A stretch of 64,000 bases of DNA from Paragordius varius. Lineage: Eukaryota; Animalia; Nematomorpha. Each line of letters opens with the position of its first letter. Within the stretch, counting starts at the first letter, position 1. Below the pieces are notes generated by a model, which was not told the origin of the DNA, made no database searches, and worked only from the letters and a program-made list of their open reading frames with translations. The position numbers and the translations under genes are program-made. The stretch covers positions 12,834,001-12,898,000 of the forward strand of contig OZ176050.1 of assembly GCA_964247055.1 (NCBI GenBank). Reading direction: 5' to 3'. Shown here piece by piece: positions 20,637 to 60,520 of this stretch.

Positions 20637-23614
20637 TAAAAATAGTATGAGATAATAATTATTTAAAAATATAAATCCGTAAATTATTAAATTAAAAATA
20701 AACAAAAATTAAGGTTTCGAATTCGAATTAAAGTAAAATAACAAGCAAGAAACCGGTGAGTAAACTCTAATAACATTTTTTACTATATCACCTTATTAAA
20801 TCCCACACTTGCATAAATCAAAACTTACGTTTCACTTTTAACCCTTATAAAAAAGTAATTCAATATTTATCTACGCAATTTTCATCATCACTGTAAGCCC
20901 TGGGCAGACAAGTTTTAAAGCCTTCAAAAGTCCAGATACATTTTAAGTCCTTACCCTTAAAACAAGGAAAAAAGAGACTTTAAACTGTATATTTTATGTA
21001 CGAAACATTTTTTGTCAAAACTAATATTTTTAATATCCCCTCCTCGGTTAAACAAATTTTTTCCTTCTTTTTGATTAAAATACAATTTTTTTTTCTATCA
21101 AACTTCGGTGATGATTGAGGCAGTAACCGACATAGATGCAGAAATAAGTGATAAAATAAATGCAGTCATAGAAAGTCCCTTCTTGGGTTTTGACTGTTCT
21201 TTCAAATTTTCATTTTGCGTTTTTTCATCAGTCTCAGACCTCTTTTCAACGTTGACCGTTAGAGTTTCAGGCAAATTATTATTGCCATTTTCATAATCTT
21301 CCTCATGCATGGGAGGATTAAAGCTTGGAGGCATAGGGGATATGTAGTGTTTTTGATCGATATCACGACGCTTACGTTGGTTCTCCTATAAACATAAAAA
21401 ATTAATTGATTAATTTAAAAAAAAATTATTAAAAATTATTATTATTAAGTATATAAATATATCTTAATCAAACATTTTATCCATTTTATAATGGTTATTT
21501 AAACATTAATAGCGTATACTGTATTATTTACAATTAAAAAATTCTTTTTGCACTTTTATTAAAAATTAAAATATAGTTATTCAACTATCATTATTAAAGG
21601 AGCAAGAAACCTGTATATGGTTTAATAATCCAAAAAACTCATCAAATAATGCACATAATCAAAAATTATTGTTAATAATCAGAATTATAACCATAATTAA
21701 TATTATTTATGATGAGAAAAAATATATTTCGCAAAAATAAAAAAAAATTGCTCGCTTTTTAATGTGAACTAAACTGTCAACGCAGGCACAAAATATATTA
21801 TAAATTTACAATATTTTCGGGAGCATTAAATGCTTGAAGAGGTGGCAGTTTAATGTCTTTGTCCGTTATTATTTGAGAGACGCCATCGGGATTACTCAAT
21901 TGTGGCACTGATGAAGGTATTGCAGAAATATTATCTATATTATCATCATGAATAGAAGAAATTTCAATGATTGCAGTTAATATAAAAAAATATAACATTA
22001 TATAATTTGCTGGTTTTTGTATTCCCCCTCGCCCAAATAAATAACTTTAATATTATAGAATGACATTTTTAAGTTTCTACTTAAACAAAAAGAAAAATAT
22101 TGTTAACAAAAAATATTAAAACACTCTGGCCATATTTAATTGCGAGCACTTTAGTTAATAAAAAAAAATTTGACGTTTATCATAAACAGTAATCAACATA
22201 ATTAATAAATTCACAACTAAATTATCAAAAATAAGGATGTTAGGTATATTATGAATAGTTAAACTTATAAGTACTGTGTGAATTTAGAAATTACTTATGG
22301 TAAAAACAGTAAATTACTACCCTATACTTGATTAAATAATTAACATTAAAAACAATATAACTTTAACTTTAACGATCAAAATACCATAGATATATATTTG
22401 CCAAAAATCTATCGAAAAATCATCACATTTTACTAAAAGATTCCATCAGTTTTTTCAATATGCAAAAAAACTACCTTTATAACCACTATTTGACGATAAT
22501 TTTGTTGAGACAGTCGGTTCACTGTTCATGAGTGTTAGGGTACACAGACTAGCTACTAAAAGACCAAGGGCAAACCATTGCATACGACTAATGAGTTTGT
22601 GGAATAAAAAGCGATAAACAATGGCCGTTAAAAAAACGCGAGATTGAATTAACATTAACCAAATGGGGGGTGTAGTGTAATTCAAAGCTGCCAAATACAC
22701 ATTATTATTCAGGGAATAAATGAGGGCTGGCAAAGCAAATGCAAAAGATAGGCGAAATCTGTGATGGCAAAAAAGTTATTATAACTTTAATTTTGTAATT
22801 TGATTAAAAAAAAAGATAAAACTTAAATTACAGGCCAACGTATAAAAAACTTTTTTTACATGAAAAAACAGTTTTATTTGTTAGCAATAAATAAGGTTTT
22901 TTGGTGAAATACAACCCTATAAAAAAATTTTTTTACATCATGCAAGACAATGTTAACTCAAAATGCAAATACTTCACAAAAATTTGCCCAGTTTAGATTT
23001 TAAAAGTTATAAATCAAATGGAATTCGATTGTACCCTTTTACGGCTAACCAAAATATGTGACAAGATAATCAACGTAAATGGTACCATAAAAATGGTTTT
23101 ACAAAAATTTCGATCTCTCTGATAACATATTGTTTTCTACTTAAATTTGAGTGATATGTTGAAAGATTATATAAATGTAAATTTAGGAATTCTGCAAAAT
23201 ATAAATAATTACAATTTTACAAGTTACCAATGTTTTAACAATGTAAAAAATTAAAAGGATTTCTTCAGAAAAATATGTATTATTAACATACCTGGATTTG
23301 CTACCATGTTTATGAGTGATGTATATATAAATCACAGCTGAAAAGAGAAGTTTTATCGCTTCAATCCATGCCACAATTTGGGTTTGAGGTATTGGATAAA
23401 GTCCTTGATTATAATATCTTATATATTAGCATTCTATAGCTTACTTAATAGAATATGTAAAAATTTGTTTGGCCACATCCAAAACAATAAAAATAATACA
23501 GTATTGAGCAGCATGTAATAAGGAAAGCTTTTTACGGGCTAATTTATCCGTACTCCGTTCGGTTTCGTTATCATCTATGAGTGGTTTTTTGTCCTCATAA
23601 TCGGTTTTTATCAT
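19445..23614 (-). CDS. SLC35A-family nucleotide-sugar transporter, 7 coding exons
   Basis: Exons 23614-23445, 23417-23292, 22758-22475, 21934-21810, 21385-21104, 20529-20430, 19998-19445, all phases consistent. Motifs PALIYSLNNN, QWFALGLL, IITEYLFK, GLAVAVIVKNLDNIVKIY. Confidence 0.88.
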
Positions 23615-23765
23615 CTTAGAAATTGATATTTTGTAAAAACTTTTGAGCAACGTTTCATAAATTTTTCTCCCCAAAAAAAATTGCCAGTTGGTGCGGATCA
23701 AATATTACACCTCATTTTATCCATTGCACGTTTAAAACATGTGATTTCAAGAAATTATTAAAATC
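23615..23765. promoter_or_regulatory. Probable bidirectional promoter / 5' UTR region between the SLC35A-like gene and PNISR
   Basis: Divergent start codons at 23614 (-) and 23766 (+), 151 bp apart. Promoter function is inferred. Confidence 0.6.
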
Positions 23766-26700
23766 ATGAATGGTGGTCAATCTAATTCCGAAATTCCTCC
23801 GTGGAGAGAGCCCCATCAAAATAAATTTGTTGCGAAACAACCTTTTAAAACATATTATCAAGAACCATTAGCCAATAATATGGAAAATCTTAATCAAAAT
23901 ATGAATAATAATAATCAAAATACGTTTTTACCATTCTCTAATATTCCATTGTTTCAACCACCTAATACATTTAACAATTTTCCTGTCAATAATAACCTTA
24001 TGAATTTTATGCCGAAAAATGCCTTGAATTTTAATTCTGGCATGTCTAATAACCCTATAAATTTTATGACAGGAAACACTAATTTGCCCAATCAATTTCA
24101 ATTTTTACCCCAACAACAGAATATGGCAATGTTTCAGCAACAAAACCAACAATTTTTGATGGCTCAACAACCAACCTTTTTACAACCACCCTCACAAAAT
24201 TTTGAAATGACTTCTGAAACTATTCAGCTAACCAATTCATTTCAATTCCCACCCCATCCTCAGTCCTTACAAATGCAAAATCAATCAATAATGCCTCCCA
24301 TGATGCATCAATTTAATCAAAATAATCTTAATAACAGCAACACCAATAATAACTTGTATGAAGCTAATTTTCCACCTTTTATAACGACGACAACACATCA
24401 TACTTCTTTGCCGATGGGTTCAGTTATACCGCATCCACATAATGTTCCTTTCATACCTCAAATGGGGCCGACAGGTTTTAAAATCATTTACGATTTTATT
24501 TCTTTACTAAAATAAATTTCTACTTTTTATGTTTTATTTTAGAATCATTATTTTTCTAACTAGATTCACTAAATATTCTTGAGTTTCAACTCTTTAAAAC
24601 AACTAAAATATGTTGTTTTCTTTTTCAAAAACATACATTACAATTATATTTTTATATTATATATATAGTCTTTCCAACTCCCACACCTGTGATGCCTATG
24701 GTTCCCTTGGTAACAACGATCCCACCTCAACAGGCTGTACGAAAAGCGTTACCCACATGGCTCAAAGATGAATTGTTGAAGCGAGAACGAGAAAAAGCGG
24801 AAAAAGAACAAAAACTCCAAAAAGATAATATTAATGAAGATGGACCAGGTATTTCTAAAGACCGCTTTTTCATATTTTTAAATGATATATAGCATAATGG
24901 TTTTTTGAGATTAAGAAATAGAAATTTTAATTGGAATAATTAATATTCAACAATATTATTGCTACTATTAATCATCGCATTGGTAGATATAAAAATATAT
25001 ACGAATCATTTTTGGTATATATATATTCCTACTTTATTTGCACGTTTGTTTTTAAAGAGCATGACAAAATCATTTATATTATTGCAAACGTTTGATCATC
25101 ATCAGTTTCTGTATATTGTGTGTCTATATATGTAGATGAAGAATTAAATGAAAAGACAACCTTTGAGAATATTGTTGGATTTGATAATAAATCGGAACAT
25201 AGTTTAGGAGCGAATGATAATTACCCCACCTCCGAGGACAGGGAACAGTCATTGAGCCCTCGTAATGATAATACGAGCAGTGAAAAATCAGTTAATACAT
25301 CTCCCTCCTTACCTCAAACCAGTGGCAAAGTTGATAAGGTACTTAAATTTTAGATTAATGAAAAGTTGAGCTTAGAGTTTTTTTCAACGATTGAACATAC
25401 AACCGAAATAGGGCTATTGGTTATAAATTATTCTTTTTAGTGAACTTGATTGTGGTTTTAAATATCAACAGACGTTTATTTTCATATTTAGTTTGTTCAA
25501 AAATAGTATAATCCATTCATCGGTGAAGTTTTTAAAAAAATTGTTTTTAACTTTTTATATGTTATTTGTCTAAAAATTTGGTTGTCATCCCATGGTTTTT
25601 TTTATAAAATACTTTTTTTCTTTTTTAAAATAATTTTACGGGCAGCGTTACGAGATATATATGCAAAATATGGATAAACAGTCACATAAATTATAACATA
25701 TAAAGCTATTTATTGTATGTTACTTTTATCTGGAAAATCTAAAAAACAATCAACACCGTTTTGAAAACCATTTAAGGCCAAAACCCCAAAGACTTCCCAA
25801 TTCGAACTCGCAATATTAACAAAAAATTCATATTTTACCCTTATTTTTTGCTTGAGATTTAAAATATGCATTTTATTACCTTGCATAAATATATTATTTT
25901 TCCTTTAACATGTCATTTTAGGTGACACAAATCAAGGAACTGTTGACGGAAATTTTGCTCCTAAGCACGAACGAATTGATAGGGGATGCAGTAAATAATA
26001 CTATGGCTTATATAAAGAAACAAAGTGAATTCATTTTCTTTTAAAACTCTCCTTTTTATATAGTAATTAATTCTCTATAGTCCGAAACCCCGATATTATC
26101 TATCAGATGCTCGACGCATTTAAATATATTATATTGTTTTATTTGATTTTATTTAAATTTGGATGACACTGGGCTTTTATAACCTTTGGATAGATACTCC
26201 TTACAACAAATCTCATTATGTTGATTCTGCCATTTTATTTTATAATGAATCTGATATGTTGTTTTTTAGTTGAAATGGAGAAAAAGGCTAATAGCGAAAA
26301 GGCTAGAACAAGGATTACCTCACTTGGTATGTGTTTTAAATGTTTAAAAATAATTTAAACTTTAGGCAAATTTTTATTAATTTAACTGTCATAATCGCCT
26401 CTGAAAACTGTAAATATTCAAATTTTATGCAAAGCGTAACTCTACCATTTTTAATTTACAATAAACTTTTTTTACAAAAATTTCTAGGAATCGGTGCTTA
26501 TGGCTCAGATACAAGTTCAAACGAAGAAGATGAGGAGCCCGATATGGAAAATGTTGAAAAGAAACAAGAATCAGCAATTATCGTTGCATTTAACCAGCTT
26601 TCAGACAAGAAAATACCATTAGTGGATCAGGCCTATGAACAACACAATTTTGATTTAGCAAGCGATTCTGATGGTACTAAAAGCAATAATAATAACATCC

Positions 26701-27880
26701 AGTCGCAATCCGAATTGATTTCAACTCACCATAGTAAAGCGTTATCGGCGCATGACCAACAAGTAATTACAAAAGACAGCAGAACTGTGGAGAGTATGCC
26801 GAGTAGTGTAACCAATAAACTTATACCAAAGTCAGTATCGACAAGTGTAACAGATTTTGTTGTTAAATTATCTAATGTAGTTGTTGTTGAACCATCCGAC
26901 CAAAGTAATACAATTTATAATCATGTTGTTACTATCGTTTTAGTTCTAATTAGATTTCTATTCAATATCATACTTCAACTTAATATCCATTAGATCAATC
27001 CTCTCAATTAAAATTGGATAAGAATTCACAATCGAAGCAATACCAAGATATTATTGTTCCTTCTGGTGCAAATACTTCTGGTATAAATTTTCCGGATAAA
27101 GATGTAAGTAAATTAATTTCTAGTGCATCGAAATCGCAAAATATCGTCAAAAAAATTGATGAGACAAAGAAAATGACCACACGAGACATCATAAATGATA
27201 CAGAGAAAACGGTGCTAAAAGCCTCAATTGGGAGTAGTCTTATGGGTGAAGTTATAAAAACAACCGAACGCATTCAAGTCAAACTGAAACAAGCTGAAAA
27301 AGAAAAATTAGCCATGAAAGAAAAGGCGGCTGCTCGTAAAAAAGCTGCTGACGACAAATTGAACAAAAGTTCTTCTGATCGCCATAGAATTCATGTTGAC
27401 AAAGGTCGGAAAGATCGTAGCAGAGATAGATCCGCGCATCATAAACGCGATAAAAAGCGACGCAGTAGATCCCGCTCTCGAGATACCACAAGTAAACGTG
27501 ATAATAAAAGCCCCCATTCTAAAGCTACTTCAACAACTTCTTTAAGAAGCAAAGAAGATAATAAAGAAAAAAATAAATCATCACATAGCTCCAAAACAAA
27601 AAATGGCACAAATCCACCTAAATCATCAACAAAACATTCCTCTGACCTGGATGTTACCAAACATCATAAAAAGGAAGAAGGAAGTGAGCGTAAAAAACGT
27701 CACAATGATGAAAGCCGCCATCACAAAAGCGGAGAACGAGCTAGGAAGCGAGAAAAGAAAAAACGGCGAAAAGCATCTTCAAAAAATTCCAAACGAAAAC
27801 GATCAACTTCTAGAAGTAAATCAAGTAGTAGCTCATCAAGTACCGGCATGGATTCTAACACAAGTTCTTATGGCACATAG
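23766..27880 (+). CDS. PNISR: Arginine/serine-rich protein PNISR (SFRS18), 7 coding exons
   Basis: Exons 23766-24474, 24669-24848, 25136-25338, 25922-26024, 26270-26326, 26488-26904, 26994-27880, phase consistent. P/Q/N-rich N-terminus, RKALPTWLKDELLKRERE, LLTEILL, LGIGAYGSD, and an RS/K-rich C-terminus. Confidence 0.87.
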
Positions 27881-31219: not shown

Positions 31220-31221
31220 TA

Positions 31222-38706: not shown

Positions 38707-41700
38707 ATGGTTATGTCAGGTCAATTACTGGATAATACTTTTACGGAACGCCAAAATATATTAAAAATATCTGAATATTCCATAAAAGAAACCATCAATG
38801 TTTTCCTAAGTGAAAACTACAATTTTGAGAATGATTCATCTGAATTAAATCAATTTTTATCGATTATAGAAAATATTTTTTTGCACCAGATAAAAAGTTT
38901 ATTAATTTTATAATGTTAGGATCCACAAGAAATTGTTGGAAATTAATTTATGCGTTTACAAAATCTAAAGAACGATACGAGCTTTTGGAAACAATAATTA
39001 ATTTACCTCATGTTAAGTATGATACTTACTATTTTTGATAAATTAGTACCTAAAATGATTATTTTATACATAATTTATTTTTAGGACAAATATTGGGCGT
39101 CTCCGTGCCTGGATCAGGTTCTCTTTGATGCAAAAAAATTTCTCGGAAACATTTGCTCAACTTGCAGAAAATAAACTTTTTCTATCGTAATTATTTTATT
39201 AACACGTTACTACATATGATTTTTTAAGATAAATCTTTGTAGGAATAACTTTTAGAAGGGAAATTATTATAATATAGCTTATTGCTAAAATAAGTTTATT
39301 AAAAATATGGCCACATAACCTCAATGAGAACAGTTGGTTTTTAATTAATAATTACGCTTATTTATTATTTAATAGCATTTAAAAATATGCATCAATATGG
39401 TGTGTTTGCTAATATTATCAGCGGTTTTGCAAATAATCTGGGCATGTCCACTACCTTTAATGAACTTTTGACAATAACGTTATGTAATATCTGTTTTTTT
39501 ACATATAATTTTTATTTTATTTAGCGAATATTATGAACCGACAGCATTTATGTTAAACGAAGAAGCTCAAATATTTTCAGGTCTTTTGTTGAGTCTCAAT
39601 TTTATCGATTACAATTTTTGCCTCCGGGAAATGGATTTGGATAACTTTGTAACCTTTTTTTTTACATAATTTCCCCCTTTTTTTCAATAATTATCCTATA
39701 ATATACATTAAAACGTAAAACAGATTTTCAATTTATGTTAGAAGTTATTTATATATTCCCTTGACTTTTTTTCGTTTTATATACTTTTTGAGTTATCATT
39801 TTATATATTTTATAAATTTCCTTAACCAGAAATTTACAATCGATGTTGGACGTTATATGAAAATTGCATCACTTGAAACTTTTCCCTTACCTGTTGCAAA
39901 TAAATTTGCGCTTCAATCGGAAAATTTTGTTAAAAATGAAACTATCGATAATACCAACACTAATTATTCCATAAACAACAATGATGGTAATGAAACAATA
40001 CTTAACAACACAACCTCAAGGGAAAATGGCAATAGTTTTGATCAAACCGATTCTATAAGTTTGGATTCATCGAGAGAGTAAATTCTACTTTTACTAATTT
40101 ATTTAAAGTTTGTTGTGGTATAAAATCTTTTAAGGAAAACCTAATATTAAGGGTTTTAATTTTAAATATCCTTAAACTTAATTTAATAATTCTATTTGAC
40201 AATTTTTGTGCGAAAAATTCTGCATTAAAAGAGTTTGGGGATTTTTTCATAGTTATACAAATATTTTTATCATATGCAGATTATTTATTTTTTGACTTAT
40301 CTAAATATATATCATTTATTATTATATACAGTATGAATTTTAATGGCCTTTCACACTATAGTAGGGCAATTTGCAACACATGAGTGTATGAAAAAAAAAG
40401 GAAATTATTGTATATTTAAAATTCTGTTTTTTTTTCATACACTATTGTGTTGAAAATTGCCTTACTATAGTGTGAAATAAGCAACCATTAACATGCTTAC
40501 TGTAATAATTTATCTTTTTAAGATTGGTTTATCATTTTATATATCATTGACTAACACTTTAACATAGAAATACATGGGAATTTATGGTTCTCCTATATTA
40601 TTAACTGATTATTTAATTCCCATCTCATTTTTAGATCCAAACTAACCGATATACTTGATCAAAAACATTACTTGGAAGAGTTGAATAAACATCATAAGTA
40701 TTTTTATTAAATTAATTTAAACCATCTCTATCATAATTATTAAATAATCTAACTCTTGCCTTTATTATAAGTTTCGTTTTAAACATGCCATTGGTTTTTC
40801 TATACTTTTGCTTTTACTAAATTTTGATAATTATACACATTTAATATAGCCAAACTATAAATGAATACAAGGACAAATATGCCAAACAGGGTAGGGAAAT
40901 TGAATCTCTCAAGAGGGAACTTAACGTGTTAGCCGATAAAAATTTGGAATTGGAAACGGCTAATAGCCTACTCATAGCAAATTTTGAAAAACCATCATCC
41001 TACAAAGATAATTTTAATACGGAGCTACAAAATAATTCAACAATACCTTCAATAAATACGAATTGCAATTCAAAACGGATTATGCGAAGAGATCAAACTT
41101 CACAAACTGATTATGATATTAATAAGGATTTGAAATCTCAGTTTCTTTCTACTGCGAACCAAGTTGAAGTAATACATTTTTCTATAGTTTGTAAATGTTT
41201 TTAATTTCCTTTTTAATCATTTAACGGTTTGTTTTTCCGGAATCGTTTTGAAAATCTGTAATTATAAGGATCTCGAAAGATTTATACATTGCTGTTTTGA
41301 TAAGTCAAAATTTTTAGAAAATAATATAAATTGATTTTATATGGCTAGCCTTTGACATTTTCATTATAATAATTAGGTTATTAAGTTTAATGAAAAAATG
41401 GTACCTAAATTAGCCTTTTGATTAAAGAAAAACAATGGATTAAATTTTGATAATATTATATATAACCTTGGCGTAGTTTTTTTCAAAAAATATGGTAGCG
41501 GGAAAGAAAGAAATATTGACCATCCTGATTTAAAACGTTTCACTTTTTATGGCTATATTTGCTTATTTTTAATCATTATCCTGTAAAAATTACCATAAAA
41601 CACAAAACTTTTAAAATATTTTTAATATAAATATTACTTTATCAAATTGTATAAAATAATATTTTATTCACATTCTTCTGCAAAGAATGAACAAACAAAA

Positions 41701-44700
41701 CATGAATGTCAAGAATCCTTATTAAAATCGACCATTAATGAACTCAAACAACAACTTCTTAACCTAAAAGCTGACAAACTGGTGATTATTTTTTATTTTA
41801 ATCCATAATTTTTATATAAGAAGTTTTTTCATATAATTTTAAATGTGGAAAATTGTTCTGTTAATTATTTTTAATTCAATTTTTGGTAATTTTCTTATAA
41901 AATGGGCATTTTCAGCTTTAAAATTTAGCGTTATAGTTTTTTTTATAGTGCATTTGAAATTTTTTTCATTTCATAACGGTTTTAATCTCAAATAATTAAT
42001 TGTATTATCCAATATTTTATAATTCATTCAATTAATATACCATTTATAGTTCAAATTCACCCTTAAACAATTTAAATTCACTTTCGAACAATTCAATTCA
42101 CCCTCAAATGAATAACATATTTTTTAAGATTAAAAATTACCTATATTTTAATATATGTTCAAAAATTAAAATTTTATTTTAAATAAAAATAATACTGCAA
42201 AAATAATAAATTATGCCATAAAGATGTATTTTATATATAATGCATAATTTATTTTTTTGTGAATTTAAATTGTTTGAGGGTGAATATGAAGTGTAAATGC
42301 CATATTTTTAACTAATTGTTGCATTTAGTTTATTCAATGTTTGTAGGAAATTTTATCTTTTACTTTCATTTAACAGAAATATGAACACTTATATCAAACA
42401 TGTAGTCGTAAAGCTGAGGAGGCACTTTCTAAATTAGGGCATTTAGAAAAGAGTGATGCCCAAAAATCGCATCAAATATTGGACCAACGGAGGCAACTAG
42501 ATGATTTAAAGGCTATAAATGCCGAAATGTATACAAAAATTGAGGTTTTTTCCTATTTTTATTGAGGATGTATCGTCTTTGTGTAACGGCTAGCCATTGT
42601 ATCCGTATAGAGAAGCTGTCTGTAATATTTGCCCATCCTGCCAGGCGTTATCATCAATGTTGGCAGGACTTAAATCATTAATTATTGTTGTTTTTCCCAG
42701 TTAAATGTTGGTCTACTCCTGCTATTGTTACCTTCGGGCGATGTAGGGATAAAATTTTATTTGTCCATTGTTCTGGAACACGTTTGATGTGTCCGAAATA
42801 TCTAGGCCTATTTTTTCTGATCATAATATTTAATGGTTCGATTTGGTACAGTTGATGTAAATTTGAAAAAAAATCGCCTTAACTAAACCGTATATGAAAC
42901 CATTTTTATTTTGTATCGTAATAGTACAAGGCGTGTTAAATAAATTTTTATACTGTTACTTTTACTCTTAACAAACATATTTCATACTTTGTGTTAATAT
43001 ACTTTTGATTTATAGCAAATTATCAATATAAAGCGATAAAATTATTTAAATGGTTATACGATTGTTTTAAAGGGTAATAAATACAACTTGTTACGAAATA
43101 TTTTTTTGTGATATGTTAGTTATAAAATTATTTGGAATACATATTTTCATTCTTATTTATAAAACGTAAGAGCTAGCTATGTTTAAAGTTATAAATTTCT
43201 TTCAGATTTACGGCGCATTCAGATTGTCAATTTTAAAAGAATATCCGTTCGTTATATTTATAAACTTTCAAATTTATATTATTTACCATACGGTATATAT
43301 TATTTAGAATTACGAAGCATCATTAAAACATAAACATGAATTAGTTAACCGCCTTGAACAAAAAAATCGAAGTATATCAACGGCCTTGAAAGATATGGAA
43401 GAAAAGTTTTAATTTTAGCATGATATTATAAATTTTGAGATAACTTTTATTGATTTTTGAATTTTTATTATAAATTTTTTATGTTGATAGATATGACAAA
43501 CTGTTGAGTTATCAATCATCGACTGAAGACATTTTCGGTAAAATGGAAAGGGAATTGGCTAAAAAAGATCAAATTAGGTAATTTTTTATACAATATAAAA
43601 AACTTTGTTAATGTATAAACAGAAAAATTTGAAATTATACGGACAAAACCTAAAAGACAACCATACTTTGTTTGACTTTATTTTTAAAAGGTTAACTCAT
43701 TGTTTTAAATTGCAAAATATATGAAATTGATATGTATATTGGTTACACAATCAATTTTATATTTTACAATTGTAATTATATAATTTATATGAGAAAAAGT
43801 ATGGTTGTCTTTTAGAAAAAAATATTTGTCTTTATATTTTTCCTTCTTTTTGTCCGTATAATTTCAGTTTTTACTGTATATACGTTTGTATGACAATATA
43901 CTAACTGTAGGGAACAATTGGAAAATGAATTGAAAATGGAACGTGAAGCTAAAATTGCTCTTCAAACACATATGCATCGTGATAAAATGGAATTTTCACG
44001 TAGACTCAAAGAAATTAGCAAGGCAGAAGATGTTCTTAAGGTAATCATTCGAATATATTAATGAATCATTACATAAATTTAAAATTTTTTATCCATCTTC
44101 AAAAATGCTTAGTATCTTGGTATTTAATGTATTGCAAGAAAAAAAACGATACAACTCTTAATTTATTTTGTTCTTTATATAATACAATACCATTCATTAC
44201 AGTGGACCCACACTTTCATAATGAGCTTTTAAAAATAAACACCGTTTTCAAACTATTTAGCTTATACTGATAATTATCCACTTGTTTAAATTGGGTATAC
44301 TTCGCATTAAAGTCCTCATAGCCAAAAAATATTAACTAGTTTTGATAGACTAAATATTTTTTAAAAGGGCTCATTATCCGCATTATGTTATAGAATTTTT
44401 TCTCACAATCGGGTTTATTATAAGGGATCCACTATATCACCCTTGAATAATTCACATTCACCCTCGAATAATTCGAATTCACCCTAAAATAAATAATGTG
44501 TTTATTAAAGATTAAAAATTAATTTTTTAATATTTTTAAAATATGATCCTCTGTTTAAAATTAATATAATCCTTAAAAAATTATAAACCATGTCGGAAAT
44601 ATTTATTTCATATGAATGATGAGTTATATTAGCCCGAAAACACATAATTTATTTTTGAGGTGAATTTGAATGTTCAAGGGTGAATTTGAATTGTAAATGG

Positions 44701-44923
44701 TTTATATATAATAGAACAATGAGTATTTACACAAAAAGAATGAAGAGTTGACAAGCGTTTTGGCAGAACAGGAAAAAACGTTGACAGAACTTGGAATCAA
44801 AATTAAAGAGTAAACTTTTTTTCAAAACCCTTAACCTCTTATTTTATTTTTAATCACTCCTAAACGACCAAAAATATGTTTTTAATTGCGAGAAATCGCT
44901 TTTTATACCGTTTTTTATTTATT

Positions 44924-44974
<51 letters not shown>

Positions 44975-45627
44975 TATTTTCTGTTTTTTTTAAAAAAATT
45001 GCCAATAATTTATGCATAATATTTTACCCTTTCAATAATAGAAGTACACTAGAAACAGATAATTTGAAAGACACGATACTACCATATTTAATTCCCGCCA
45101 AATGGCAAAAAGACGACGAAGTGTCGCAATGCCCCATATGTAATGTGTCTTTTACACCTCTCAATCGTAAGGTTAGTAAAATGAAATATTATTTAATAAT
45201 ATATTATAACTTATAGTTTAGTTTAAATAAGTTGTTTTTCAAACCATTCCTTAAATTTCGCGTTGTTTTTATTTTTCTTAAAATGTTACTACGGCGGACA
45301 TCTTTTGTTTAACATAAAAAGTTTTGAATATTTTAAATTTTTGAATATTTTAATTTTTTATAAACATTAAAATATAAATCAAAAAAATAATATTTTAATT
45401 TAGCAGTTAGATAATTAATAGATGCCTTATTTTCAAACGTTCACTGCATAAGTTTTTTTAATTATTTTTATATCATTTAGCATCATTGTCGAAATTGTGG
45501 CAAAATATTTTGTAAAGAATGTTCTCGATACAAAATTGAAACAGCCTACTCTTCGAAACCGGTCCGTGTATGCCAATCTTGCCTTAATTTATTGCAAAAC
45601 AAATCTTCACCTCTCATTAAAACTTAA
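38707..45627 (+). CDS. RUFY: RUN and FYVE domain-containing protein, 15 coding exons
   Basis: Exons 38707-38896, 38920-39016, 39085-39186, 39525-39648, 39830-40077, 40635-40697, 40850-41168, 41686-41781, 42377-42544, 43308-43405, 43491-43577, 43911-44040, 44715-44809, 45042-45171, 45481-45627. RUN motifs KTNIGRLRAWIR..LMQK and ILDQKHYLEELN, coiled coil, FYVE WQKD..C..C...RKHHCRNCG..C..C...RVC..C. Confidence 0.92.
40329..40502. mobile_element. Palindromic MITE (CAGTATG family)
   Basis: TA|CAGTATGAATTTTAATGG ... CCATTAACATGCTTACTG|TA, with complementary arms. Confidence 0.8.
42038..42302. mobile_element. MITE, TACCATTT family, copy 3
   Basis: TA|TACCATTTATAGTTCAAATTCACCC ... GAAGTGTAAATGCCA|TA. 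Confidence 0.78.
42570..42880 (-). pseudogene. RTE-like LINE 3' remnant in a RUFY intron
   Basis: Minus strand reads IRKNRPRYFGHIKRVPEQWTNKIL, then SRSRP..NW after a frameshift. Confidence 0.7.
43619..43877. mobile_element. Tc1/mariner-type MITE (same family as 2830-3094)
   Basis: GAAATTATACGGACAAAA ... TTTTGTCCGTATAATTTCAGTTTTTACTG|TA. Confidence 0.78.
44433..44702. mobile_element. MITE, TACCATTT family, copy 4
   Basis: CACCCTTGAATAATTCACATTCACCCTCGAATAATTC ... GGGTGAATTTGAATTGTAAATGGTT|TA. Confidence 0.75.
44929..44972. repeat. (TA)n microsatellite; others near 158-186, 5905-5926, 7029-7048, 7674-7704, 20608-20635
   Basis: Seen directly. Confidence 0.9.
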
Positions 45628-47578: not shown

Positions 47579-50500
47579 ATGGAAAAATCTGTTGATGCAA
47601 AGCCTATTGTCAAAAAACGAAAAATCTCTTCTGTTTATTATCACATCTTTAAAGCTCTCATTGCACGAAGTTTATTTGGCCTCCATGGTTTCGTTACGAT
47701 ATGGAAAGTTGTTGAAACTTTAAACATTTTTACACTCTGGTTCTTAGCTATATCTTTGGTCGGATTACTGTTAGAAACTATTCTATGTGTGTGCTTACGA
47801 AAAGGCCAAGAAATAGCGGGGTATACATAATATTCATGTAAACATTGTTTCAAATTTTAAATCCCATACTGCCCATTCAGATGGGGCAATATAAATAAAA
47901 AATAACGAAATACGCTAAACAGCTGATTCAATACATTTTGCTATTAGGTCCATAATTGGTCGAATTTCTATAATATGGTTGTTTAAATATTTTTTCCAAT
48001 GGTTTAGCAAATTCTGATTGCATTTAATTGCCATTTTTTATTGTTGTTATTGAACCCTAACTGAAATATTAGTTTAAAGGGTACACATTGAAATAAATAA
48101 TAAATCTAATTGAAGGCCGATATCGAGTTTTAAAATTAATTTACTTTTTTAATCCAATAGATTCTGTTTCAGTATGTTCTTTTACCTGTGTGCCGTTGTA
48201 CCGTCCATTTGGCTCCTTGAATTGCATTCTGCACATCAACGAACCCAAACTTCATTCCGTTTTATCAATACGAACAAAAATAATCCAGATAATAACACTA
48301 CAAAAGATTATAATAATATAAGTGATCCCAGAGATTATAATATTTTAACATCTCAAACTAACACACTCACTCAACTTATTGGAGTTGATGTATTCCGTTA
48401 CATTGAGGTAAATTTATTAAAAAAATTAAGCTGAAATGCGTACAAATATAAAAAATATATATTTTAATTTTCGACTTTAATAGTAAAGTCTTTATTTCGA
48501 TAAAGACTTTACTATTAAAGTCGAAAATTTCAGCTTAATTTTTTTAATAAATTTCATAAATATAATGCGTAATTCCCTCAACTTTAATTGAGGTAAATTG
48601 TTTTTACAAAACGACTTAAGCCATATATTTAAGGGTCTATGTTGTAAAAACCCCTAGTGTTGCATAAAAATTAAGAATAAATGGTACAGTCATGTATCGT
48701 TTATTTTATTAGAAATTTATTTTTTTTCGTTAAATGGGCATTAATATTTGGTAAAGAATGGAAAAAACAAGAGCTCTATGGTAATTCTTATACTTTTTGA
48801 TGAATATGATATTGTTAATACCATAGAGCATTGGTACTCAAACCGCGGCCCTAAGAGTGCTTTAAAATTGCCCTATTACCATATTGATACTCAAATTATT
48901 TTTTTTATTGATAAATTTTTAAAATACACATAAAGGAATTTTTGCTTATTTTATAATTTTTTTTTCTTTAAATTTAATTTTGGTAATTTTTACTTTTTAC
49001 CCAATTTGAAATGTAGAAAATTTCCCTCTATTAAAATGATTTCAAAATATTGGCACACGTTGTTTCTTCTGTATTCTATTTGCTTTTTTATATTAAAATT
49101 TTTATTGCATTCCTTTTTTGTAATTAAGCAAGCCTTTCACCCAAACTTGCATATACATATTCTTTTTTGCTATGTATCATTTTTTATAACTCATTCCCAT
49201 AAAATATGTTTTAAATCAACATCATTAAATTTCGTTTTTTATATCATAATTTAAATTATATTCCTAATTTTTTAAAAAAACAACATGATATCTAAACATA
49301 AATTCAAAGGATGAATCTAATGCTAAAAAAAGTAAGTTATCCGATTCGTTTCTTTTAAAAGAATGAGAAGAAAAATTCTTTGTCGTTTTAAATAAAAATG
49401 TTGTTACCACCTGCCTTATGTAGAAACAACATAATTATAAAAAAAATAAAATATTAAAAAACATAATACCCATCATTCTCATAAATTACCAAAAAATCAT
49501 GAGGTAAGAAACGAAAAATATAAAAAAAATTAAGGAATTATACCAGAAAGAAAAATCTATTCGGTCCGCTTTTGCCCACGAAAAAGCTGTAACATTAACT
49601 TCGTATGAAATTCGCTATATTTTAGGAAAAAATATGAAGCCGTTTACTGATTCCCAACTAATAAAAGAATGCTAATAAATGATTCCACTTTTATTTGATA
49701 AATTCCATAATAAAGAGCAAATCAGAGACAAATTAAAAAACTTCAACTTTCTGATTCAACTCGACCCATTGAAGATATGTCTAAATATATATTAACAAAA
49801 CATTTTTGCCTCTGAAAAAGTAATATTTTAGTATTGCTATTGATTGTAGCACTGATATTAGTTCAACACCCCAATATGCGCTCGTGAGATTTTGCAACGA
49901 AAATTTTTATCAATGAATAATACCACGAGAGGAAGTGATTTTCTCAAAATAATTAGCACTTTTTTCGATTATAATGATTTATAGATGAAAAAATTGGTTT
50001 TGATCTGCACAGATGGCTGTCCCTCTATGATTGGAATAAACATTATCAAAATGTTTTAATTTTTACATTGTGCAAAACAGGTTTTTAGTTCGATTTACAT
50101 GCGATCCGCAAAAAATTCATTGTGCTGATTTATATATTTATGTGCATATGTGTCAAATAGCTATGAAATGTTTGCCATTACAAGGTTGGCCCTTGAAAAA
50201 AAATATACTTGATTTGGCCCGTCATATTTTTTTATTGAGTACCACTACCATAGAGCTCTTAATTTTTCCATTCCTTATACCAAATATTTATATCCCTTTA
50301 AAGAAAAAAAAATTTTGATAAAAAAGGATACATGACAGTAAAATCTAAGCATGTTAACACATGTAAGTTTTATCTGCAACACAAGGTTTAATCTTAATAT
50401 TTCAATATTTTTGTTAAAACGATCAATAAAGAAATAAAAACAAATCAACCCTTACCCCTATCTAACAACCAATAAACCATTCATGTAGCTTATGTTTGGA

Positions 50501-51353
50501 TAATTTCTATTTATACTTTTTAATTCTATTTAATTATCCTTTATCGTTATATTACGGATTTTAACAATTGTTATTATAAAACACTGTTTGCTAGAAAATT
50601 ATTTATACCTTTTTTCCCATTATTTAACTTATCGATTTCAAAATAGTAACTAATTTAGAAATAACTCGGTAAGCATCGGTTAACAACATAATGTAATTTG
50701 TATAAACTACCTAATAACCTTTCTAGGAACATACACCCGTGTTTATGGATGAAGCTATGTGGACTCATGTTTTGGAACAAATCCTATTGGTCGTCATTAT
50801 TTTGGCCCGCTGGCTTCTACCCAAAGGTAAAATGAGTCGTGACCAACTTTCACAATTACTTTTAGTCCATATCGGGATTTCGGCTGACATCATCGAGTTT
50901 CTTGACATGTTTAATGACGAAACTGTGAAATATCACCTAAAGCTTTGTAAAATTATACTTGCCCTGTGGTCTTGGAGTTTAGTTCAATTCCTTTTCGTTA
51001 CACCATTTTCAGCAGGGAGAAAACCAAGATTTGTTTGGTTACCGCTATGGAATCACAGTAGTCGATCGTATCTAACCGATATGTCATACATAAACATTCA
51101 TGTAATGTCTTTACTATTTACCTTATTCATGCAAGATGGTCCTTTCTTAGCCATGAGACTTGTATTAATTTTACGATTCGGTGCCGTAAATTATATGATG
51201 ATATTTTTCACATGTAAAAATGCACTAATCACAGCATTGCAATTATACCGCCTTTGGGTCGTACTCTATGAAAACTACCGAGGTCGTAAAAAACTTAAAC
51301 TTATAAACATAAAACGAACCAGCATTCTTCCTGTAACCAGAAGATCTGTGTAG
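47579..51353 (+). CDS. TMEM26: Transmembrane protein 26, 3 coding exons
   Basis: Exons 47579-47820, 48161-48407, 50727-51353, phase consistent. Motifs ARSLFGLHG, FYLCAVVPSIWLLEL, EQILL..IILARWLLPKG.MSRDQLSQLLL, MQDGPFL..RL, FFTCKN. Confidence 0.92.
48687..50338. mobile_element. CAGTCATGTAT MITE split by a hAT insertion
   Basis: TA|CAGTCATGTATC ... GATACATGACAG|TA. Removing 48829-50255 restores the reverse complement of 6577-6804. Confidence 0.85.
48829..50247 (+). mobile_element. hAT (Buster/SPIN-like) element, internally deleted, with a transposase remnant at about 49560-50090
   Basis: TIR CA(T)TGGTACTCAA / TTGAGTACCACTA and 8-bp TSD CCATAGAG (48821-48828, 50248-50255). Remnant motifs KPFTDSQLIKEC, LQLS, FSIAIDCSTDISSTPQ, TTRGSD, ICTDGCPSMIG. 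Confidence 0.9.
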
Positions 51354-51607: not shown

Positions 51608-51817
51608 CCCAGTCTAAATAAACGTTTTCCCAGTCAATCGAAACGTTTTCCCAGTCAATCGAAACATTTTCCCAGTCAATCGAAACATTTTCCCAGTCAA
51701 TAAAAACGTTTTCCCAGTCAATCGAAACGTTTTCCCAGTCAATTGAAACGTTTTCCCAATCAATCGAAACGTTTTCCCAGTCAATAAAAACGTTTTCCCA
51801 GTCAATAAAAACGGTTT
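51608..51817. repeat. Ten 21-bp units (CCCAGTCAATCGAAACGTTTT), left TIR
   Basis: Counted directly. The mirrored array of ten units is at about 53848-54057. Confidence 0.95.
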
Positions 51818-53568: not shown

Positions 53569-53847
53569 TCTTTTTATAACATATACAATAAATGAAAACC
53601 ATTTTTTAATATATTATCTAAATTTGTCTCTTTAATAAAATCAAACAATGATTGATTTATTCAGGTATATTTGTGCAGTAATAGTTCAACTTTTTAAAAA
53701 TAAGTCATTAAAGATTGTGTTGTGGAATATATGGGAAAAATTGTCATTAAATAATTGTGTTTTTTTGCAAAATTTTATCCTAATATTACGCTGATAATGG
53801 TTAAAAGTTATTTTTGTATCTTGTTTTGATATTTATTATCAAAAATA

Positions 53848-54057
53848 AAACCGTTTTTATTGACTGGGAAAACGTTTCGATTGATTGGGAAAACGTTTCA
53901 ATTGACTGGGAAAACGTTTCGATTGACTGGGAAAACGTTTTTATTGACTGGGAAAATGTTTCGATTGACTGGGAAAATGTTTCGATTGACTGGGAAAATG
54001 TTTCGATTGACTGGGAAAATGTTTCGATTGACTGGGAAAACGTTTATTTAGACTGGG
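53848..54057. repeat. Ten 21-bp units (AAAACGTTTCGATTGACTGGG), right TIR
   Basis: Counted directly. Reverse complement of the left array, with a different order of variants. Confidence 0.95.
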
Positions 54058-55543
54058 AAATGGTATATTAATGAAGCTCATTTTTTTCAGTTTCTCTATG
54101 TATATTCTCTCCGAGGCATCTCAAATGTTAATTAAAAAAAGTGTAATTACATAAATGAAAGATTTATACCAGTCCAAAGATTTTTAAGCCGAATATAATA
54201 AGAGTTACAACACACGCATTTTTAGCTTAAAAAATTTGGTGGGCGCATTGAAAATATAACAAATAGACATTAATAAGTAATTTATCATATAGCAAAGGGA
54301 TAAAAAATCTACCACAATATATCTACAAATTATTGATATTCTTTCCGTTTAAATTTGGAAATATTCAGATTTTCCAATAAAAATCAACTAAAATATAAAA
54401 ATTGAATTTTATCTTTACAGTTTTTGTTTATGAAAATTTCGAATGAATAATATATTCACGCTAAAGATATCTGAGTACTCAAAATCCAATTTATGAGAGG
54501 TATAAAAATTTTTAGAGCCTTAAAATAACCATTTACCGAACAATTAATAGTGTTAATAAAATAGATATAATTCTGAATATATAATAAAATAAGGTAAATG
54601 ATAATTTTAGATTTATTTTTTTTTAAAGTTTTCGGGCTGTAAAATTTTTGATAAGGCTTGAATACCCGTGTTTTAAAAGTATCATTTATTCAACCATCTA
54701 ATTTTTTAATCTGACTTCAGTCCCACACTACCTGAAAATAGTAGGTATAGAAAAATTTTGCTCTCTTTTATTTGAAAAATTTATCCATAAACAAATTATC
54801 ATATATTAATATTTGTTCTGATACAGTCTAAAATTTAGGACTTGAAAATGTAATGCATTAATGTATTAATAGAGAAATGATTTAAGGACAGGCTTTCTTT
54901 AAACGAGTAGTCATATTAACACAAACTCTTATTTTTATATTTTAATATGCTATTTTAGCAAAGCACATACGTCCATAAGACGTGTTGCGTGTTGTAAACC
55001 TTTGCCTTAGGTTTTCTCTTGTACTATTAGAAAATCTACTACAGGATTATATAAATATGACATATTTTAATCTTTGTATGTTTTGGGATTCGATTTAGAT
55101 AGATAGCGCTTTGACGATCCGACAAAAATCTGCGGATCCAACGCCGCACAAGAATATAAATGCAAAAACTGCGGCAAGCAACTGATTATTCATATTTTGA
55201 CAATAATGTATTAGGGGAATAAAACGCATTTTAGATCCCAGGACTATGCAAAAAAGGCAATTTTTGTATTTAGCAATTAGTCTGATAATTTTTAAATAAA
55301 TACTGTATAAAAACTACCACTATTCCTCACGATAAAATAAATAATAATTTATTTTTGGAATACAAATATATTGCAAGATGCTCCAAATAATCCAAACACC
55401 ATGTTCCCTTTTCTGGTCGTCAAACACATACTTTTACATAATAAAGCAGCATAATAAATATTTTTAGCGTCTGTCTACCAGACACACACAAGTGACATTC
55501 AAAAGCAATCAATATTGCTAAATTATAATGCATGCATGCTGGA

Positions 55544-58500
55544 TCAAAAATCAATGTAATCATCATCGCCATCATTATCTGAGAGGTGCCCATTCATTGC
55601 TGTATGATCATGAGTTGAGATCAAAAAGTCAGAATCATTCCAATGTTCACCCCGCATTTGAGCAAGCAATTGCGCAGCTCCAACTTCACCATCTTCTTCT
55701 TGTTCACCTGCTATTAAGTTCGTGCCGTTTGTAAGTCCTCTTTTAACTGTATAATTTTGTTGACCCTTGTCGTCATCATCATTATTGTGACTAGTTGGAC
55801 TCATTAATACTGATTCAGTATCGTCCTCCTCATCTTCACTATCATTATCGGAATAAGGGGGATCGGAATCATTGATGGTTTTTTCAGTTATTTTTATACC
55901 ATTAATTTCTTCAGTGTGTTGATCTTTCATAGCCTTAATAATTGGATATTTTGGAAGACTTTCACCAGGCAAGATTTCAACGTCATCGACCAAAGTAGTG
56001 GATTGGTCATTATGTAAATTCTTTGTAGTTGCGGGTATAAAATATATAGATGTTGACGGAATGTTTGAGTCATTAGTATCGGCTTTAGTTGTTTGATGAG
56101 CGGTAGATTGTCGTCGCTTTGACTCAAATAATTCCTGGGATTTTGGGCTAAATCTAACTCTCTTCCCTGTGGCATGAGGTGTATTTTGATATTTCTCAGA
56201 TGTCTGTGATGATTGCATTTCTGATTTAAACTCCAAGGCAGTTAGTTCCGAATTAAATGAATTATCAAACTTGATGTTTGTAGCAAAGGTTTGACTAAAA
56301 AACAAAATAAAATATTGAGTAGAGTATTAAATAAGTATTCAAAGATAATTAATATCCATAACATAATAGATTAAAACAAAACTTAATAAACCTATCTTCT
56401 GAAAATGTATCATGCTTTTGGGTTGTTAAAATTATGCTTTCATCATTGTTAAGAGCAGCTGAATCATTTTCCATAGGATTCGGGTCAAGCAAATCCTTAA
56501 GAACGTCATAATTTATTTTGGCAGACATTTTTTTGACCTTAGGCGTCCCCGTTAAAACTGTTTTATGTCCCATGCCTTCATTACCTAAAATGATATATTA
56601 AAAATACTTTTGCTATCAAATAAATATTTATTTAAAATGCATGCTAGGATCATATATATATTATATACAATATATGAAATTATAAAAAAGATTCTAAAAA
56701 AAGAGAAAAACATTCTTATTAAATAATATTAGATAATAGACTTAAAAATAACTTTTAATACTCAAAACAAACACTATTTTACATATGATTAAATTATGGT
56801 TAGGAATACAATGTTTAGATAAAACAAATGGCCCCCAAATAATTTATACATAATAAGCTCTTGCTTAATTTACATTTTTTTTTCGCCTATTATCGGTCGG
56901 TAGTAAAATCTTACCAGATGACATTGTGGCACTACCACCACCTCTTTTCCCAGATTTGTTATTATTACTGGCAGAGGATTTCGTCGTTGATTTTAACCCG
57001 TCATTTTTTCCACCATCATCATTATTCATAGAATCATCAATGTTATCATTATTCGATAGTGTGTTATTGCTTTTTTCCTCTTTAGCCTTTCTCCGTTCCT
57101 CCATAAAAGGGCCAAATTGACGTTCCCAAAGTTGAGTTTTAAGGGCGACTTCATGTGGGCCCAGCAGTAAGGCTTCAATTTCATCATCATCAATGTCCGA
57201 ATAATATAGCTCAGCATGATGATGACTGTTGGGAGGAGATGTTGCTTCTTCGTAGTCGTTGTTACATTTTGTAATGGTATTATCTGATACCATGCATGAT
57301 TTTAAGCCATCACTAGAGCATAATATAAAATGGAAAATTTATATGATTGTAGGTGTTATATTGTGAATTTTTAAATTATATGTCTTAGAATAGAGATGTA
57401 TTAGTTGAATTTATTATGACAAGGATTGCCTATACAAATCTGAAATATAAAAAAGTTTATAAGTTTTTTATAATAAATTATTAATATTGAATATAATTTT
57501 AATATGCGATCTTTCCACTTTTTTGAAATAGAAGTTGTTTTAAGTAACAACGATTGAAAAAGCACAATGTAAGTAAAGAAAATAAAATTAGAAAACAGAT
57601 ATTTATGTAGCGTGAAAAATACGCGTAATTTATTAAAAAATCCTACCGATTGATTTCTGAAGTAGTATTTGAATCCGTTAAACCGCCCAATGATTCGATT
57701 GTAGGAAGATATTTGTTACCTGCAAATGTTTGTGTAAATAAAATATCATTAATATAGAGACATTTTGCTCATTTTAAAATAATAGTATAAGATATAAATT
57801 TTTGAATTTACAACATTAAAAACGCAAATTTTTGATTTAGATAACAAAAATATGTGTATTGAAATTCAAATCACAAGTACATACCGATATTTCGTTTGGT
57901 CTCTGGAGTCAAAGCTATTATATTTTCATCTTTTATACCATTTGTTGATTCAATTGAAAAACCATTTTTGCCCGGCAAAACGCCTTCATTTTCAAGGACC
58001 TGAGAAAGGGCTTGTTGATCAATCAGCGCTATAGCAGTGCATTCCTCATCATCTATAAATCAGAATTTAAAAAAAATTTCTAAACTATTTAATGGAAGGT
58101 TGAATTTATCAATAATTTTTTAACCTCATTAAGTTCCATATAATTTTACGTTGTAAATAAGAAAAAATGAAATGATTACATATATGTATTTATTGATAAT
58201 ATTAATATTTCATTCTTGACCATTTGCAAGAAAATTTTTTGTTACCAGTAAAATTATGTCTACATCATATTTTATATGCAAAAATGATTTCTAAAGAAAA
58301 AAAATATGTAAATTTAACAATCAATACAACCCCAGTATAAATTAATACATATAAAAATTAAACAAAACCATAAAAGGCGTACGTACTAGGATTCAATGGG
58401 ATAGTTGTGCAAAGTAAACCAAAATTTTTTCGTTTTGCCATTTTGCTTTTTGCCAGCTCTTGTTCGATTTGCGTTTGTAATCCCTTAATTTCCTCCTTTA

Positions 58501-60520
58501 CATGATTGAACTAATTAAAATTAAAAATATGTATTAGAATTTGCTATAAATATTTATAATGATTACTGATAAATATTGTATAATTTATCAATTCAAAATT
58601 CTTTTGTAATATTTTAAGCTTTTAAAAAATATATGAATGGAAATATTAAACTTGTTTGCCCCTTATTAAAAAACCATACTTATTTCGTTGGTTTTTGCAA
58701 TACATACCATAAAAATTGCATATTAAAATATAAAAACCTAATAAGCCAAGAAATCATTTAATTTCTTTATGGAAAAAAATTTACAAAAACAGCCAAAATT
58801 AATAATTTTAAAAATCAAATTCAATAATCAAAATAATTATCATAATAGTACCTTCAAAGTATCCATCATTTGTTTTGACATTAATTTTGATTTAGCGAAA
58901 GAGGGCGGATCACATTCTTCCTCTAAATCGATTTCAAAAAATTCCGTCAAACTCAAAGCGGCCGATGGTGTGGCAGCAAATTCTTTAAGCCTGAATTTCC
59001 AGTAAATACAATTATAATATAAAAAGTTTTTTTCATAAACTAAATGAGACAAATAATGTAATTTATTATGTATGATGATCATATAATTTATTTAAAAAAA
59101 TTTATCACAAAATGCGTTTTAATTATTTTATTATACATGATTTGCCATTAAATCATTGTTTTTTATTTTGTCAAATCTCCCATACCTAATAGTATTTATT
59201 GATCAGGATAATAATATTATAATTAAAAAGTTTAACCCAAGTTTGACGTCAATTTTAAATACTTAAAACTCAAACGTACTATTAAAAATCGAAATAACCA
59301 TAAAACATAAGCTTTTAACAAAAAAAAACAACATTTTCGATTCAAGTTTCACCGACATTCCAGTCCTCAAAATCACTAAAATATCACATCCATACATAAA
59401 AATAAATTAGATATTTCAATATATTTGCTTGTATCGCTTTTATATTTAAAAATTGCTCAAATCAAAATACTACAAAATAAAAGTTACCGTTTTTTAAGGG
59501 TAGTTTCTCGAATGCGAACAATGTCCACAATTTGTCGCGTTGTCCGATTGAAATTATGTAAGCGGGCTGCAACCAATAGCGCAGCACCACAAAGACCAGA
59601 TGGACGTCGGCCTGCGTGAATCCAATCCTTTTTCATGCGGTTTATAAGCCGAAGTGCCGTCATAACTACATCGTGGGTATTTTTCCCTGCAAAACAAAAT
59701 TGTTTAGAAATTATATTTTAAACAAGCGTGTATGCTATAAAGTATTCCTAATATTTTCATCATGCGATTTGAGACGTAATAAATGAATTAAACCAAAAAA
59801 TACTAACCCAATTCGAGTTTTTGGGCAAATCGAGGGATGTATAGAGCAGGATCCGTAACAGGTGCATTTATGCAAAGCTCAGAAGAGAGTTTAAGATAAT
59901 ATTTTCCCAAATCAAAGATGGAAACTGAGAGCGCATCTGAAAAATCAAGGAGTAAATGAGTTGTCCCTTCCAAACGACAAACCAAATAAAGTAAAGCCCC
60001 ATAAAGAACTGGATGTCGACGTCCACGTGTTATTCCTTTAAATAAGGCAAGTTTATAAAAGTTAAATGCCGTATCCAAGCAATATGAACTAATTTTTAGT
60101 CGACTACCAATCCTATTTAAATCGTTTCTGGCTCTGGCAAGAGTGTTTTGAGACGATACGGAGTTCGGGACAGAAGCGTTAGATTTTTTATGTTCGTTAT
60201 CTTGTAAAGAGGTGGAATACGATGAATACTTTTTGGAACCACCAATATTCCTTGAACTATGGATAACGCCTAAAATTTGATAATATAAAATTACCATCTT
60301 CATTGACAAAAGTTCCGATAGCTGAAATCGCACCGTTTTCTTCTTGAAATCCAACTTCAGAAACAATCAATACATCTTCAACAACAGATCCACAATTTAT
60401 GCAAACTGAATCACCCCTTGAAATTTTATTATAATTTTACCTAGACGGTTCAGTATCAATGTCAGCAGAACCACAATTTGGACAAGTATGATTGGCAATG
60501 CTTTTATTAGTATCTGCCAT
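55544..60520 (-). CDS. BRF1: Transcription factor IIIB 90-kDa subunit BRF1, 11 coding exons
   Basis: Exons 60520-60441, 60416-60295, 60269-59808, 59686-59488, 58990-58852, 58510-58387, 58052-57885, 57719-57647, 57312-56915, 56584-56392, 56294-55544, all phases consistent. Zn ribbon [56 protein letters not shown]. Confidence 0.95.

Follow-up and report, generated by a model that had tools for sequence, protein, structure and literature searches.

How an animal genome with kilobase-sized introns might also splice introns of only 23-27 nucleotides (nt), and why such introns should lie near the starts of genes, is the question raised by a 64,000 nt stretch of the horsehair worm Paragordius varius (OZ176050.1), hereafter the window. 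A preliminary description of this DNA had noted four GT-AG segments of this size, here called micro-introns, in the genes for BRF1, a RUFY protein and an SLC35A-like nucleotide-sugar transporter, and had read them as a discrete class, confined to 5' ends and perhaps removed by a splicing route of its own. We surveyed the whole window, whose G+C content is 20-34% per 2-kb bin. Judged from the DNA and from protein comparison, the four segments are very probably genuine introns. We consider it most plausible (probability roughly 0.72) that they would be U2-type GT-AG introns at the lower length limit, handled by the ordinary spliceosome, and that their 5' polarity would come from intron-size evolution. 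The description of a discrete 23-27 nt class beside ordinary and kilobase introns, confined to 5' ends in this window, stood, and the separate splicing route found no support.

Four micro-introns at the 5' ends of three genes

The intron statistics rest on 28 introns that we re-derived in four closed gene models, BRF1, RUFY, SLC35-like and, as a control, TMEM26. All four models were complete and without internal stops, which for the first three was the case only once all four micro-introns had been taken out. The BRF1 gene (55544..60520, minus strand) has 10 exons encoding 868 amino acids with the Pfam domains Zn_Ribbon_TF, TFIIB and BRF1, and its 9 introns measure, in order, 24, 25, 121, 497, 341, 334, 601, 330 and 97 (or 88) nt. 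The RUFY gene (38707..45627, plus strand; 12 exons, 609 amino acids) carries an N-terminal RUN and a C-terminal FYVE domain (Pfam) and has 11 introns of 23, 68, 338, 181, 772, 517, 595, 1382, 674, 232 and 309 nt. The SLC35A-like gene (19445..23614, minus strand) has 7 exons encoding 537 amino acids and 6 introns of 27, 533, 567, 424, 574 and 431 nt, and TMEM26 (47579..51353, plus strand) has 3 exons encoding 367 amino acids.

Two of the micro-introns fall in BRF1. Its intron 1 (60417-60440, minus strand; 24 nt, GTAAAA..CAAG, phase 2) falls within the sequence for the TFIIB-type zinc ribbon, 80 nt downstream of the ATG, and its intron 2 (60270-60294, minus strand; 25 nt, GTAATT..TTAG) interrupts a Gly codon in phase 1, 202 nt into the coding sequence (CDS). 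RUFY intron 1 (38897-38919, plus strand; 23 nt, GTTTAT..TTAG, phase 1) lies inside the RUN domain, 190 nt into the CDS, and SLC35 intron 1 (23418-23444, minus strand; 27 nt, GTAAGC..TAAG, phase 2) lies 170 nt into the CDS. Reading these segments again from the sequence gave the same coordinates, lengths, GT-AG ends and phases as had been described before, and bore out that the 24- and 27-nt introns hold an in-frame TAA and that the 23- and 25-nt introns shift the frame.

When the 28 introns were sorted by length, the series ran 23, 24, 25, 27, 68, 97, 121, 181, 232 and so on up to 2,319 nt, with a median of about 340 nt. The micro-introns (4/28) span a 5-nt band, which is followed by a gap up to the 68 nt of RUFY intron 2 (39017-39084, plus strand), the shortest ordinary intron and the upper edge of the empty interval of 28-67 nt. 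This agrees with the earlier statement that the next-shortest intron is 68 nt, which had been made from about 45 introns; our own series covers 28 introns in the four genes and about 4 more in a fifth. Each micro-intron was also, as described, the first or second intron of its gene (three first, one second, and none at position 3 or beyond), so that the shortest class sits at ordinal positions 1-2 in these four genes, as in the bias reported for Gyrodactylus that is taken up below. Within 300 nt of the ATG, 4 of 7 introns were micro-introns, and further down none of 21 was. Confinement of the micro-introns to the first ~200 nt of the CDS is real in this window.

Colinearity and intron position in BRF1 and the SLC35-like gene

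The BRF1 micro-introns are, by protein comparison, the best supported of the set. Residues 12-21 of exon 1 matched positions 2-11 of the Pfam profile Zn_Ribbon_TF and residues 1-25 of exon 2 matched positions 18-42; because exon 1 consists of 26 whole codons and a split Arg codon, the two halves of the zinc ribbon are exactly colinear across intron 1. The spliced protein aligned without gaps with 11 homologues across this junction (..PSR|GD..). Retention of intron 1 would place a TAA in frame and add 8 residues to the otherwise gapless zinc ribbon, and retention of intron 2 would shift the frame, with a stop 12 codons on. A 30-nt alternative to intron 1 (GTCTAG...CAAG) was ruled out, as it would delete the conserved Ser-Arg.

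We compared intron position and phase across orthologues for BRF1. Intron 1 of the Ixodes scapularis gene (~1.7 kb) interrupts the same residue in the same phase as BRF1 intron 2 (phase 1, in the Gly codon), and BRF1 intron 4 (497 nt, phase 2, in an Arg codon) likewise coincides with an intron of the tick gene. These two coincidences indicate that the gene retains ancestral intron positions, and that BRF1 intron 2 is an old animal intron which is tiny here. The annotated gene of Soboliphyme baturini had no counterpart of intron 2.

These results also bear on the suggestion that RNA splicing is not involved, the segments being eliminated somatically from the DNA, bypassed by recoding, or, for TAA, read as sense. 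Their ends are GT-AG and not TA, BRF1 intron 2 has the position and phase of a spliceosomal intron of the tick, and two of the four shift the frame. TAA is an ordinary terminator here, ending both the RUFY gene and a DUF229 gene whose 3' end lies in the window and whose Pfam match reaches 495 of 496 profile positions, and the 8 residues that a retained BRF1 intron 1 would insert stand in a gapless domain. We regard this explanation as extremely improbable.

Support for SLC35 intron 1 was solid at the level of sequence. It is the sole GT-AG segment of 15-45 nt at its site that restores the frame, and if retained it would introduce two in-frame stops. Exon 3 matched positions 86-165 of the Pfam profile Nuc_sug_transp, and the last exon also matched this profile. 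Exon 2 carries a motif, E-x-IKLL-x-S, which we take to be that of the second transmembrane segment (TM2) of the mouse CMP-sialic acid transporter. By this motif intron 1 would lie between the exons for TM1 and TM2, and colinearity across it is plausible; PDB searches with exons 1 and 2 returned nothing specific. The start of the SLC35-like gene lies 151 nt from the start of a divergent neighbor (23766, plus strand), and a 15-codon upstream open reading frame (ORF; 23611-23658, minus strand) overlaps its start codon as ATGA.

Splicing signals and the proposed cap-proximal route

In composition the micro-introns were 74-88% AT, and all four had an A 6-8 nt before the 3' end, which is expected by chance at this AT content; SLC35 intron 1 has CTAAT 8 nt before its 3' end. 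Their donors were GTAAGC, GTTTAT, GTAAAA and GTAATT, and not the /ATATCC or GTATCC with a TCCTTAAC branch site that marks U12-type introns. The 8-nt donor of RUFY intron 1, GTTTATTA, recurs unchanged in an ordinary intron, the 97-nt BRF1 intron 9 (56295-56391, minus strand). GTTT-type donors, with a T at +3 and +4 that is unusual for animals, also occurred in other ordinary introns, among them SLC35 intron 5 (20530-21103, minus strand; GTTTGA) and the first intron of the gene at 23766-27880 (24475, plus strand; GTTTTA).

The preliminary description had proposed a distinct cap-proximal route, assisted by the cap-binding complex or using a compact spliceosome, that would act only at the 5' end beside normal splicing. 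The location of all four micro-introns, 80-202 nt into the CDS with none further down, is what such a route would predict. However, length was the only feature that separated micro-introns from ordinary introns: the GT-AG ends are the same and one donor is identical. Ordinary introns also share the 5' zone, namely RUFY intron 2 (68 nt), SLC35 intron 2 (533 nt) and TMEM26 intron 1, whose 352 nt at CDS position 242 show that 5' proximity alone is insufficient for tiny size. Moreover, canonical U2 and U2AF persist in lineages whose introns are almost all of this size, wherever in the gene they lie (PMC13644364). No result supported the separate route, which we consider very unlikely. A related possibility is that splicing of introns below 30 nt is position-gated, such that it would work only within a few hundred nt of the cap or promoter through contacts with the cap-binding complex or the early-elongation polymerase, and that selection would keep the 5' introns tiny and forbid such introns downstream; this, too, seems to us quite improbable.

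Intron-size evolution as a probable source of the 5' polarity

Under the reading that we prefer, in which the micro-introns are ordinary U2-type introns, the ordinary spliceosome would recognize each of them whole, by intron definition, and the A located 6-8 nt before the 3' AG would serve as branch point. The four would be members of a genome-wide class. At least BRF1 intron 2 would be an ancestral animal intron that has shrunk rather than one newly inserted, and introns downstream would have grown, the largest by way of high-copy repeats, while those near the 5' end stayed minimal. Direct evidence covers the anatomy of the sequence, the requirement that the segments be removed, protein colinearity, one intron position conserved with its phase, the DNA at the RUFY site and the position statistics; that the segments are spliced, where they branch, that they are recognized by intron definition and why they cluster at the 5' end we infer. 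We think it more likely that the 5' confinement came from intron-size evolution than from a second splicing machinery. The kilobase introns of RUFY, being filled with repeats, would fit a growth of downstream introns by insertion. Very high-copy repeats were observed in RUFY introns 5, 7 and 8 (40273-40666, 41849-43030 and 43622-44015, plus strand), where k-mer depth in DNA runs was 1e5-1e6 versus 200-600 for the unique flanks.

Several results weigh against this reading, and those that concern RUFY intron 1 and the position statistics are given with these subjects in the paragraphs that follow. Repeat growth explains the pattern only in part, because several introns of 340-570 nt were single-copy in k-mer depth and hold no high-copy repeat. 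BRF1 intron 1 had no counterpart in Ixodes scapularis or in the annotated Soboliphyme baturini gene. When all 15-45 nt segments joining the two frames within 30 nt of each site were counted (168-527 per site), 0.27-0.86 of them per site were expected to carry GT..AG ends by chance, and the joint probability of at least one at all four sites was 0.027. As the per-site expectation is not small, GT-AG ends by themselves are weak evidence, and the case rests on colinearity, on conserved position and phase, on the narrow size band and on the closure of whole genes. RNA-labeled runs bearing the same species label contained 0.00 of the sampled BRF1 and RUFY words, and run X4 gave no contig on the RUFY stretch. 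A search for transcript-derived protein fragments across the junctions found none; the query with BRF1 exon 3 gave one nematode match and that with the last SLC35 exon gave none.

RUFY intron 1 is the weakest of the four, and we still hold it to be very probably real. The match of exon 1 to RUFY3 covers residues 10-60 and runs as far as an HGLK motif next to the donor, that of exon 3 covers residues 101-130, and the 23-nt segment is the only frame-restoring GT-AG segment of 15-45 nt at the site. Exon 2 alone had no detectable homology, and the spacing from HGLK to NLPxxK in the spliced protein is 33 residues, 7 fewer than the 40 of RUFY3. Adding a single A to the A5 run (38892-38896) would open an intron-free frame with a spacing of 41 residues, which is nearer to that of RUFY3, and the donor GTTTAT is weak. 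It might therefore be argued that the 23 nt are not an intron, and that the break comes from an allele with a frameshift, from the recent loss of 1 nt in formerly coding sequence or from a residual assembly error, which would leave three real micro-introns.

The preliminary description had named assembly artefacts exposed by raw genomic reads among the grounds for rejecting the micro-introns. At the RUFY site, a separately assembled 240-nt contig from DNA run X1 spans 38738-38977 and agreed exactly with the assembly (0 differences, 0 gaps, no indel listed); the A5 run and the 23 nt are both present in it unchanged, so that the frame break lies in the DNA, with the limit that X1, as probably the sample behind the assembly, is not a fully independent witness. 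None of the 11 remaining exons of RUFY is broken, an ordinary intron (BRF1 intron 9) uses this 8-nt donor as well, and the peptide obtained by reading through had no detectable similarity to the RUN domain either. PDB searches with exon 2 and with the read-through frame gave nothing specific. Taken together, these observations make a non-intronic origin of the RUFY segment distinctly unlikely.

A contig from run X3, which derives from a related organism, was ~95% identical over 38920-39314 (plus strand), from RUFY exon 2 to intron 3. Its alignment ended precisely at the first base of exon 2, and 30 nt over the micro-intron remained unaligned. This alignment edge hints that the 23 nt may diverge faster than the exon.

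It is also conceivable that the 5' bias arose from small numbers and from the way in which the introns were discovered, since micro-introns would be easy to spot where conserved N-terminal domains flank them and might escape notice in 3' regions of low conservation. The cases number only four, and the genes at 23766-27880 and 960-7540 have been modeled only in part. Open-frame and codon-bias scans for unbiased discovery were noisy, as antisense and low-complexity frames scored like real exons, and in the codon-bias scan even the SLC35 and RUFY micro-introns, which were already known, did not rank. On the other side, the four genes closed fully with no unexplained frame break downstream, and the remaining candidates shared acceptors with ordinary introns or joined frames that look non-coding. 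The hypergeometric probability was 0.0017 for location less than 300 nt from the ATG and 0.0034 for ordinal position 2 or lower, from a position test that was devised post hoc and has n=4 micro-introns. We consider this explanation by small numbers and discovery rather unlikely.

Within the genes, the candidates at 56585-56607, 22759-22785, 19999-20020, 40059-40078 and 41163/41169-41187 were dropped on inspection on these grounds of acceptor and frame. A hidden micro-intron in the 3' half of RUFY was also rejected, as the phase conflict there was solved by an ordinary 95-nt exon.

Comparison with other short-intron lineages

Two known systems each resemble the P. varius micro-introns in part. 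For animals, PMC13644364 gives introns below 30 nt for Dicyema (D. japonicum) and for myxobolid myxozoans and nowhere else among 51 metazoan genomes, with median introns of 27 bp in Henneguya salminicola and 22 bp in Thelohanellus and Myxobolus rasmusseni; its authors predicted that further lineages with such introns exist. As here, these parasites have GT-AG introns below 30 nt, which lie at conserved positions and are flanked by conserved exons; their 5' signal (GTa) is weak, a few A's stand a short way before the AG, and a real polypyrimidine tract is lacking. They differ in that the short class is the bulk of their introns, with a median below 30 nt, and in that their genomes are compact. 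In P. varius, by contrast, the short class makes up 4 of 28 introns around a median of ~340 nt, is restricted to the 5' end and stands beside introns of up to 2.3 kb that are full of high-copy repeats, in a window that also has a 10-kb gene desert, transposase and reverse-transcriptase ORFs and repeats with k-mer depths of 1e5-1e6.

The second system is Gyrodactylus salaris, in which intron lengths have modes of ~32 and ~58 bp and the ~32-bp mode dominates ordinal positions 1-2 (PMC4040987), so that the generalization that first introns are usually the longest, on which the preliminary description had drawn, is not universal. For bimodal intron lengths in tapeworms, PMC4040987 cites Tsai et al. 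2013. Like P. varius, Gyrodactylus salaris is a parasitic worm with its shortest class at positions 1-2, longer introns from position 3 on, and much longer introns as well. However, its short mode is ~32 bp rather than 23-27 nt, its second mode of ~58 bp is close where we found a gap up to 68 nt, and it belongs to the Platyhelminthes. What is new in P. varius, as predicted here, is that introns as extremely short as those of dicyemids and myxobolids show a positional bias like that of Gyrodactylus, in the repeat-rich genome of another phylum.

Introns of 20-30 nt are characteristic of Paramecium, where stop codons in introns whose length is a multiple of three are said to expose retention to nonsense-mediated decay (NMD). 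The ciliates resemble the present case in intron length, AT-richness and a canonical spliceosome, and differ in that all of their introns are tiny and show no position effect; those of Stentor are 15-16 nt, as cited in PMC13644364. The preliminary description had hinted at selection for visibility to NMD here too, because both micro-introns of such length (2/2) carry an in-frame TAA. A GTAA donor in phase 2, which both of them have, yields NNG|TAA of itself, and an in-frame stop occurs in any case in 56-60% of random AT-rich 24- or 27-mers. Since donor and phase force the TAA, selection for NMD visibility cannot be inferred, and we claim no NMD-driven enrichment.

Our literature search found no published account of intron length in Nematomorpha, and the word "intron" is absent from the Gordionus genome paper, which reports a BUSCO score of 71.6% and a G+C content of 26.93% (the window has ~27%). 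If RNA confirms the four micro-introns, horsehair worms would be the third animal lineage with introns below 30 nt, and the first in which sub-30-nt and kilobase, repeat-filled introns coexist in the same genes. This would offer a natural comparison of minimal and ordinary introns within single genes, and would allow direct tests of how short an intron the animal spliceosome can handle and of how 5'-biased short modes arise. Common gene finders refuse introns this short, the default minimum of AUGUSTUS being 39 nt. If so, predictions for many nematomorph genes would be wrong in their 5' exons, and the low BUSCO score of Gordionus and the large-scale gene loss claimed for Nematomorpha may in part be artefacts of annotation.

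Other features of the window

Apart from the four closed models, the window contains a RUS1 (UVB_sens_prot) gene (7976-9592, minus strand) in a single uninterrupted exon of 538 codons. Its nearest homologue was a Gordionus sp. protein of 639 amino acids (E 3e-105, 39% identity over 93% of the query), with a bit score of 371 versus 248 for the runner-up, so that a nematomorph was the top match by a wide margin for this one gene. The Q/N- and S/R-rich gene at 23766-27880 (plus strand), which is modeled in part, has ~4 introns, each of at least 89 nt. A tRNA gene (31222-31294, minus strand; Rfam, 73 bits) lies inside the 10-kb gene-poor stretch.

Traces of mobile elements included an RVT_1 reverse-transcriptase fragment (12220-12450, plus strand), a Harbinger-like DDE_Tnp_4 ORF (4902-5417, minus strand) and a DDE_3 transposase ORF (52942-53469, plus strand), the last of which is flanked by inverted arrays at 51579-51861 and 53804-54068. 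These arrays consist of a 21-nt tandem repeat, one frame of which reads ..ENVSIDW...

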